In this document: positions 20,332 through 21,937 of the stretch, piece by piece | Position numbering within the stretch: position 1 is the stretch's first letter | Layout: every line of letters begins with the position of its first letter | From: Auanema rhodensis | Taxonomy: Eukaryota; Animalia; Nematoda | DNA length: 64,000 nucleotides | Assembly: GCA_964057225.1 (NCBI GenBank) | Contig: OZ059897.1 | Location: 12,276,001 to 12,340,000 of the forward strand | Direction of reading: 5' to 3' | The notes under the pieces: generated by a model | What the model was told of the DNA's origin: nothing | What the model saw: the letters and a program-made list of their open reading frames with translations, nothing else | Databases searched by the model: none | Translations under genes and position numbers: made by a program

Positions 20332-21937
20332 ATGTTATCTGCAATGCGCCCCACGGAATCGAGCATGAACAACCGTGCAGATGATATCTTAAGTGGATTT
20401 AAGCTGTAAGTTACTTAGAAGTATTGATAATTCAAAGTGATGCTCTATAGAAATTGGATGAACTTGAGAGATGCCGAGAGCGGAAAGATTTTATGGCAAA
20501 GCACTGAAGATATGGCTGATCCCAACAAAGAACATGAAGGTAAATAAATTTCACAACTTGCCGAATAATCAATCCAAAGTTAAAAAAACTGTAGATACAT
20601 TACTCTTCTTATACATATGTGTCTATTTCAAAAATTACTAATTCATAAACTCAATAATTTGAAAATGTGGTTTCCCAAAACATTTGTCTCTGAATAAACC
20701 AATCTTCACAATTATCTGCCTGGGGCGGTATTGATTATCTTCACTGACCATTACAGAAACCGAACATTCGTTCTCAATTCTGTAGGTTAATATACTACCT
20801 ATGTACCACACTGACCTGCATAATACATTCTGATTTATCATGAAATTATCAAGTTTTAATCATGAAAATTACAAAGCTACACAAGTTTTTTAGTTACTTA
20901 TTGAATTTAAAAATTATATAACTCACAATAGAGTGGTGTAGTGTTTACATCCTTAAATGCGGTTTTTCAAAAAGCTTGTCTCTGAATAAACCAATCTTCA
21001 CAATTATCTGCCTGGGGCGGTATTGATTATCTTCACTGACCTTAACAGAAACCGAACTCTCGTTCTTAATCGCTGTCTGTTACTTTACTACCTATGTACT
21101 ACATTGGCTTGTTGAAGATTTACTTATTTATCATGAAATATGAAATTTCAATCAGGAAAAATAGCAAAATACCCAATTTTTTACTGTAATTTCGAAGATA
21201 AACAATAATTTTTTGAATGTATATGACTGAGTGTTGTTGTTTTCATATCCTCAATATACAAAAAGTCTCGGAATGAATACCAATCGTCATAACTGTCAGC
21301 CTGGGGCGGTTAAACTATCTTCATAGACATTTGATGGAATAGAACCAATAACCCTCTCGTACGTTGGGCAACCACCTTGTTGCGCCACGCCGATCGATAC
21401 AGATACATATTAACTAGCTCGTTGTATCATGATCGTAAACATTATCAAACTTATTCAAGACATTTTAGTAGCAAACTCGTTTTAAGAAATATAGTACTTT
21501 TCAGCACATGTTCCAAAAAGCATATTAAAATGCCGTACAGTTTCCAGAGAAATAAATTTCACATCGGCTGAAAAAATTGAAAAATTTAGGTTAGAACAAC
21601 GAGTATTTTTGAAGGGAAATATTATTGAAGGTAGGTTTCAGAAAACAAATCTTAAAATCAAGTTTTGTTTCAGAATGGTATTTTGAATTCGGTTTTGTAA
21701 TACCGGAATCAACAAATACGTGGCAAAATCTTATTGAAGCAGCTCCAGAATCTCAAATGCTTCCAGCGTCATTATTGAGGTTTTTACAACTTTTAATCTT
21801 TTGTTGCTGGAAGATTTTCCCATTAAATACTATAATTACAATTCTTCTTTTCCAGTGGAAATGTAGTTGTTGAGACTTTGTTCTATGACGATAACTTGTT
21901 GGTCAGCACATCGAAAGTTCGTCTTTTCTATGACTAA
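20332..21937 (+). CDS. pdl-1: Phosphodiesterase 6 delta-like prenyl-binding protein
   Basis: [66 protein letters not shown]. Intron 2 spans 20540-21504. Confidence 0.96.
20686..20748 (-). ncRNA. Box C/D snoRNA, U31(SNORD31)/snR67 family, copy 1
   Basis: GTC-A-GTGAAGA(C)..AATACCGCCCCAGG-CAGA(D')..GTGAAGA(C')..CAGA(D)-GAC, then TTTT nearby. The guide is complementary to the LSU rRNA P-loop CTGGGGCGGTA. Confidence 0.8.
20978..21040 (-). ncRNA. Box C/D snoRNA, U31/snR67 family, copy 2
   Basis: Identical to copy 1 over the snoRNA body while the flanks have diverged. Followed by TTTTT. Confidence 0.8.
21265..21328 (-). ncRNA. Box C/D snoRNA, U31/snR67 family, diverged copy 3
   Basis: GTCT-ATGAAGA..ACCGCCCCAGG-CTGA..ATGACGA..CCGA-GAC-TTTTT. 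The D' guide is conserved. Confidence 0.85.
21329..21397 (-). promoter_or_regulatory. tRNA-like Pol III A/B-box leader of snoRNA copy 3 (similar leaders at about 20749-20817 and 21041-21108)
   Basis: A-box-like TGGCGCAACAAGG and B-box-like GGTTCTATTCC at tRNA-like spacing. Copies 1 and 2 have T(G/A)GTACATAGG and GTTCGGTTTC. Confidence 0.65.

Follow-up and report, generated by a model that had tools for sequence, protein, structure and literature searches.

The 64,000-nucleotide window analysed here, a single stretch of DNA from the nematode Auanema rhodensis, carries a plus-strand gene with an intron that houses three small units on the opposite strand (coordinates are window positions unless a contig is named). 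PF05351 (GMP_PDE_delta) matched plus-strand exons on either side of these units. Exon 2 (20454–20539) ends in ...EHE and is followed by a GT donor at 20539/20540; intron 2 spans 965 bp (20540–21504), closes with a TTTCAG acceptor ending at 21504, and contains all three units in antisense orientation; exon 3 occupies 21505–21629. As the original prediction had it, this intron is unusually long, at 965 bp against ~43–75 bp for the other introns of the gene. With a single host exon (21625–21870) as query, the named relatives were PDE6-delta proteins and a GMP_PDE_delta protein from the nematode Angiostrongylus. We refer to the host as pdl-1, after pdl-1/C27H5.1, the C. elegans orthologue of PDE6-delta. 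A second GMP_PDE_delta gene, presumably an unc-119-type paralogue, lies elsewhere in the genome (C7:12944903-12945483), with four exon matches whose Pfam scores exceed those of the host gene. Judged from the list of open reading frames, the window also holds repeated units resembling cortactin/HS1-type repeats (22700–24230, plus strand) and frames resembling the RNA polymerase II subunit RPB4 (17558–18169, minus strand).

Within the intron, the three units run head to tail along the minus strand from 21400 down to 20677. A repeat search placed their starts 292 and 289 bp apart, in agreement with the predicted spacing of ~290 bp. All three follow one plan: a leader of ~70 nt with box A-like and box B-like motifs, a box C/D snoRNA of 63–64 nt, and a run of four or five T. 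Each snoRNA body (63, 63, and 64 nt in units 1, 2, and 3) is closed by a GUC/GAC terminal stem and carries C, D′, C′, and D boxes. This anatomy, too, is as originally described.

In unit 1, the leader (20750–20821) contains a box A-like motif at 20808–20797 and a degenerate box B-like motif at 20766–20756; here and below, motif positions descend in 5′ to 3′ order on the minus strand. The 63-nt body (20686–20748) comprises the C box (20744–20738), the D′ guide (20730–20720), a D′ box CAGA (20718–20715), the C′ box (20710–20703), the D guide (20702–20693), and a D box CAGA with the closing stem (20692–20686). A T4 run at 20677–20680 is a candidate Pol III terminator. Unit 2 has the same snoRNA sequence (63 nt, 20978–21040; D′ guide 21022–21012), preceded by a leader at 21042–21114 (box A-like 21101–21090, box B-like 21058–21048) and followed by a T5 run at 20969–20973. 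Unit 3 is a diverged copy. Its leader (21330–21400) bears a box A-like motif at 21387–21375 and a strong box B, GGTTCTATTCC, at 21346–21336, and its 64-nt body (21265–21328) has a C box AUGAAGA, a D′ guide at 21311–21301, a canonical D′ box CUGA, a D box CCGA, and an insertion in the D guide. The T5 run of unit 3 (21260–21264) stands directly after the terminal stem.

Comparison with Rfam, which the original prediction had proposed as a check, matched all three bodies to two families. Against RF01646 (ceN63, 'Caenorhabditis snoRNA ceN63'), units 1, 2, and 3 scored 63.9, 63.9, and 42.7 bits (E = 9e-13, 9e-13, and 6e-7), none reaching the gathering score of 65. Against RF00089 (SNORD31), they scored 41.9, 41.1, and 36.2 bits, with units 1 and 2 above the gathering score of 40 and unit 3 below it. 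E-values over both families and all three copies ranged from 9e-13 to 1e-5, and the matches are far beyond chance. The SNORD31 alignment also bore out the identification of the D′ guide as that of U31/snR67. A search of the whole 181-Mb genome for the C box combined with the D′ guide found no match besides these three genes. In a metagenome search, the C box and guide pattern returned five matches, all chance occurrences in GC-rich bacterial contigs.

Each body has a C box, GUGAAGA or AUGAAGA, near its 5′ end and a D box, CAGA or CCGA, near its 3′ end (C box/D box at 20744–20738/20692–20689 in unit 1, 21036–21030/20984–20981 in unit 2, and 21324–21318/21271–21268 in unit 3). Set against RUGAUGA and CUGA, both boxes are non-canonical in every copy. 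Both partners of the kink-turn U–U pair are changed in all three: U5 of the C box to A, and U2 of the D box to A in units 1 and 2 or to C in unit 3. The ceN63 consensus in Rfam carries the same two-sided change (GUGAaGA with CCGA) and that of SNORD31 is canonical; the change is family-wide.

We then considered what the guides would pair with, using the rule that a guide of at least 10 nt beside a D or D′ box selects the nucleotide at the fifth pair from the box. The rDNA was located with an exact 20-nt P-loop pattern, which gave ~660 matches in a tandem array of 6567-bp repeats on contig C8, where Rfam identified LSU, SSU, and 5.8S. When SSU, 5.8S, and the entire LSU were compared with the D′ guide ACCGCCCCAG, a single Watson–Crick site emerged, CUGGGGCGGUA, which belongs to the LSU P loop. 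Units 1 and 2 form an 11-bp duplex with it and unit 3 one of 10 bp. Counted from the D′ box, which reads CAGA in units 1 and 2 and CUGA in unit 3, the fifth pair involves the second G of GGGG. The motif CTGGGGCGGT occupies 2248–2257 of an annotated E. coli 23S sequence, making that second G G2251; the annotated sequence is 2906 nt long, not 2904, and its local numbering agrees with the textbook numbering, in which U2249 is followed by G2250–G2253 and C2254. The guide points, then, at the P-loop G equivalent to E. coli G2251, the very nucleotide originally predicted as the D′+5 target. The prediction had staked itself on such a target existing in this genome's rRNA, and it is present exactly once.

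The D guide offers less. In units 1 and 2 its sequence is UUGGUUUAUU, and its sole near-perfect rRNA complement is 18S 720–729, with nine Watson–Crick pairs and one G–U. This AU-rich site is a weak candidate, at roughly the level expected by chance in 5 kb by a rough estimate; if used, it would place a methyl group on A724. For the D guide of unit 3, altered by its insertion, we found no site in SSU, 5.8S, or LSU. The rDNA array itself (C8:10974000-11963578) includes some blocks that are inverted, with strand flips near 11231916 and 11383194, and its left edge carries at least nine copies of a 148-bp subrepeat, followed by a 26S fragment starting at model position 2391.

The leaders share a fixed geometry. 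Box A and box B start 41–43 nt apart in all units, with box A ~60 nt before the mature 5′ end. Measured against GGTTCGANNCC, the box B of unit 3 is near-consensus, with one mismatch (GGTTCTATTCC), and those of units 1 and 2 are degenerate, with three mismatches and a GTTCGGTTTC core. When the leaders of units 1 and 2 are aligned (77% identity), the A and B positions fall in the two blocks that are free of mismatches. Past each stem, at a distance of 1–6 nt, there are four or five T in a row, and no T4 occurs inside any leader plus body; only ~20% of 142-nt windows in this DNA are free of TTTT. A and B boxes at tRNA-like spacing upstream of the RNA, with a run of at least four T after it and none inside, are features of C. 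elegans snoRNA genes of the upstream motif 2 (UM2) type. A composite pattern that combines a box B with a C box, a D box, and a T run is matched in the 64-kb window by unit 3 alone. Around box B, the leader of unit 3 (21355–21336) resembles that of ceN47 elsewhere in the genome (C7:15842033 region), with AGGGTTATG-GGTTCGATTCC in ceN47 and AGGGTTATT-GGTTCTATTCC in unit 3; this extended likeness hints at a constrained element longer than the 11-nt box B, or at descent of both from one kind of tRNA T arm.

The original prediction described the leaders as tRNA-like, which holds for their box A and box B promoter motifs and fails for their fold. Under default settings ARAGORN found no tRNA in the window, and Rfam gave no tRNA match to the leaders at E up to 10. 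Relaxed ARAGORN settings drew a 72-nt cloverleaf on the unit 1 leader, at a stringency where such calls are background (28 per 64 kb at ps80, 208 at ps70). At minimum energy the leaders fold into two hairpins, not a cloverleaf, and the folds differ among the three (z = −3.2, −2.4, and −0.4). In genome searches each leader sequence returned nothing but the leaders themselves, which makes them neither a SINE nor copies of a tRNA gene. These results bear on whether the units are true dicistronic tRNA–snoRNA genes, as in plants, with each leader a functional or foldable tRNA freed by RNase P and RNase Z. Such genes would account for the presence of both boxes and for the relaxed cloverleaf, but the default ARAGORN and Rfam results, a relaxed call at background level, hairpin folds not common to the three leaders, and the lack of relatives among the genome's tRNA genes make this very improbable. 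The proposed removal of the leader by tRNA-processing nucleases fares no better: because the leaders are not foldable as tRNAs, processing by RNase Z is unsupported.

Strand constrains how the RNAs could be made. The usual animal mode, processing of a snoRNA from the intron of its host, places snoRNA and host exons on the same strand. Here the exons are plus-strand and the snoRNAs minus-strand, so the latter cannot be released from the host intron, as had been predicted. Experiments in C. elegans provide a precedent for another route, one to which the prediction also appealed, that of snoRNAs transcribed by Pol III from tRNA-like upstream motifs. UM2 of C. elegans snoRNA genes consists of a box A and a box B like those of the internal tRNA promoter, and both are needed for expression (Li et al. 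2008, PMC2527325). UM2 transcripts start 70 nt upstream of the mature 5′ end, 9–13 nt before box A, and end at TTTT (PMC2527325). At four loci the precursor with UM2 still attached was isolated; the leader fragment on its own never was, and the authors propose either cleavage with rapid decay or trimming by a 5′ exonuclease (PMC2527325). Pol III and TFIIIC ChIP peaks lie over 51–52 C. elegans snoRNA genes (PMC5364375; PMC6950938), and intronic UM2 loci are expressed independently of their host genes (PMC1474057). CeN63 itself is reported to sit in an intron of C27H5.1 (pdl-1), with a second snoRNA, DQ789560.1, across exon 2 (PMC2651899), and it lacks a TMG cap (PMC2200864 supplement).

The arrangement at the pdl-1 locus fits the UM2 architecture point by point (PMC2527325), which suggests independent transcription by Pol III. 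We propose that the array consists of three box C/D snoRNA genes that belong to the CeN63 family of nematodes, counterparts of human SNORD31/U31 and yeast snR67, and that each unit would be its own transcription unit in the UM2 layout. Pol III would start ~10 nt before box A, in unit 1 ~9–13 nt upstream of it if the position reported for C. elegans applies (PMC2527325); it would read through leader and snoRNA to give a transcript of ~140 nt and stop at the first T4–T5 run. snoRNP proteins would then assemble on the C/D kink-turn, after which the unstructured leader would be removed; cleavage and 5′–3′ trimming as far as the snoRNP seem a likelier means than tRNA enzymes. Through its D′ guide (10–11 bp), the finished RNA of 63–64 nt would pair with the 26S P loop and direct 2′-O-methylation of the G that corresponds to E. 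coli G2251 and yeast G2619. Like the polymerase, the start site, the removal of the leader, and the P-loop methylation are reconstructed from the architecture together with the C. elegans experiments. For family, layout, independent transcription, and mechanism taken jointly, we put the probability at a little over three in four.

The degenerate box B of units 1 and 2 leaves some room for a different source of the RNAs. They could be genuine snoRNAs cut from a longer RNA that Pol II makes from the minus strand, a non-coding antisense or read-through product spanning the array, with the A- and B-like motifs surviving as relics. Against this, it is the A and B blocks that are conserved in otherwise diverged leaders, and every stem is followed by its own T4–T5 run with none inside the units. 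The same layout has been shown to be an autonomous promoter in C. elegans by mutation and RACE (PMC2527325), and no minus-strand coding exons flank the array. We regard a Pol II precursor as unlikely. Were the units instead transcribed autonomously by Pol III, their orientation in the pdl-1 intron would be immaterial, and promoter and gene could be copied together in tandem.

Comparison of the units with one another bears on how the array arose. Units 1 and 2 are identical at 66 of 66 positions across the mature RNA region (20749–20684 in unit 1); outside the body, one count of the flanks gives 68–77% identity, and a breakdown by region gives 77% for the leader, 72% for the upstream sequence, and 52% for the downstream sequence. 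At the divergence of the flanks, the chance of 66/66 identity is ~1e-11. Unit 3 is 73% identical to unit 1 in the body and 45–56% in the flanks. Whole units are homologous, flanks included, which supports amplification by tandem duplication as originally proposed. Judged by its divergence, unit 3 is much older than the pair formed by units 1 and 2: an older duplication would have given unit 3, and a later one units 1 and 2. Constraint does not extend to every base of the body, since between D′ and C′ units 1 and 2 have bases that neither unit 3 nor the C. elegans consensus shares. The original prediction read selection from the fact that copies 1 and 2 are identical over the snoRNA body only. 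The observation stands, with 66/66 in the body against diverged flanks; selection as the sole implication is on weaker ground, since selection acting along with gene conversion centred on the body may account for the identity just as well as selection alone.

The divergence of unit 3 also raises the question of its function. Neither of its Rfam scores (42.7 and 36.2 bits) reaches the gathering score of its family, its D guide is interrupted by an insertion and has no rRNA site, and its P-loop duplex is 10 bp rather than 11, all of which would suit a duplicate in decay beside two working genes. Yet it has the best box B of the three, a canonical D′ box CUGA, an intact stem and P-loop guide, and five T immediately past the stem, and the contrast between a body 73% identical to that of unit 1 and flanks near random at 45–56% suggests continued constraint. 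Decay of unit 3, which would be compatible with our main explanation as far as units 1 and 2 are concerned, is a possibility we take seriously while thinking it doubtful. A more elaborate arrangement would give the two isoforms separate jobs. Units 1 and 2 would be double guides, for the P-loop G and, by way of the conserved D guide, for 18S A724, with bodies kept identical by gene conversion; unit 3 would guide only to the P loop, from the strongest promoter; and the antisense cluster of TFIIIC and Pol III would modulate pdl-1 transcription. If true, such modulation could explain why the linkage between CeN63 and pdl-1 has been kept across rhabditid nematodes. As a package, we judge it quite unlikely.

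The layout recurs elsewhere in the genome. A genome search for box B followed by a C box gave 11 matches, against 1 for a reversed control, and among the 11 were ceN47, three sn2903-family copies in an array, and two units in tandem at a distance of 201 bp. The tandem pair (C1:15841078-15841308, minus strand) consists of a box B leader and a C/D snoRNA, twice over, with canonical C/D boxes, a GAGC/GCUC stem, and oligo-T; the segment covering both units had no Rfam match at E up to 0.001. The sn2903-family array lies within C6:11893664-11896692 on the minus strand, with copies at segment positions 1512–1419, 1271–1178, and 1037–944 (Rfam scores of 60.6, 54.2, and 54.2 bits). Each copy stands behind a box B leader, one with a leader of its own and two with a near-identical leader, the same 1+2 pattern as at the pdl-1 locus.

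Taken together, the interpretation offered by the original prediction is supported in its essentials. It is not new: the gene family, the pdl-1 host, and the promoter type have already been published for C. elegans, and the novelty of the finding had been overrated. Given the C. elegans precedent for family, host, and type of layout, the finding is an ordinary one, and the array opens no new question. Its value lies in three points. The three genes are predicted to be this nematode's sole guides for the conserved ribose methylation in the P loop; they would provide a further case of nematode snoRNAs driven by decayed tRNA-type Pol III promoters; and, on that prediction, they illustrate why self-contained units duplicate in tandem and sit in introns in either orientation.

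Among known systems, human SNORD31 (U31) and yeast snR67 share with the array the D′ guide UACCGCCCCAG and the P-loop G target equivalent to E. coli G2251. Their C and D boxes are canonical, whereas those of the array are deviant. SNORD31 is released from an intron of a gene transcribed by Pol II, on the same strand as that host. Plant dicistronic tRNA–snoRNA genes (Kruszka et al. 2003, as cited in PMC2527325) and yeast snR52 are alike in placing tRNA-type A and B boxes upstream of a C/D snoRNA for Pol III; in the plant genes a real tRNA is freed by RNase Z, in contrast to the leaders here, in which no tRNA is detectable.

The closest relatives are in C. elegans. With CeN63 (RF01646) the array has in common the C box GUGAAGA, the P-loop guide, the D guide UUGGUUUAUU in units 1 and 2, the D box CCGA in unit 3, and the host gene, a PDE6-delta orthologue; the likeness covers family and host. 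The best score against the CeN63 model, 63.9, is just under the gathering score of 65, and three copies share a single intron here, whereas in C. elegans CeN63 and DQ789560.1 reportedly flank exon 2 (PMC2651899). Compared with the UM2 Pol III genes of C. elegans, the array belongs to another species, and its box B is degenerate in units 1 and 2. Like those genes (Deng 2006; Li et al. 2008, PMC2527325; Ikegami and Lieb 2013, as cited in PMC5364375), it places A and B boxes upstream of the mature RNA and inside the predicted precursor. It likewise has a leader of ~70 nt, a putative stop at four or more T, and an intronic location, and the host-independent expression of the C. elegans genes is predicted here as well.
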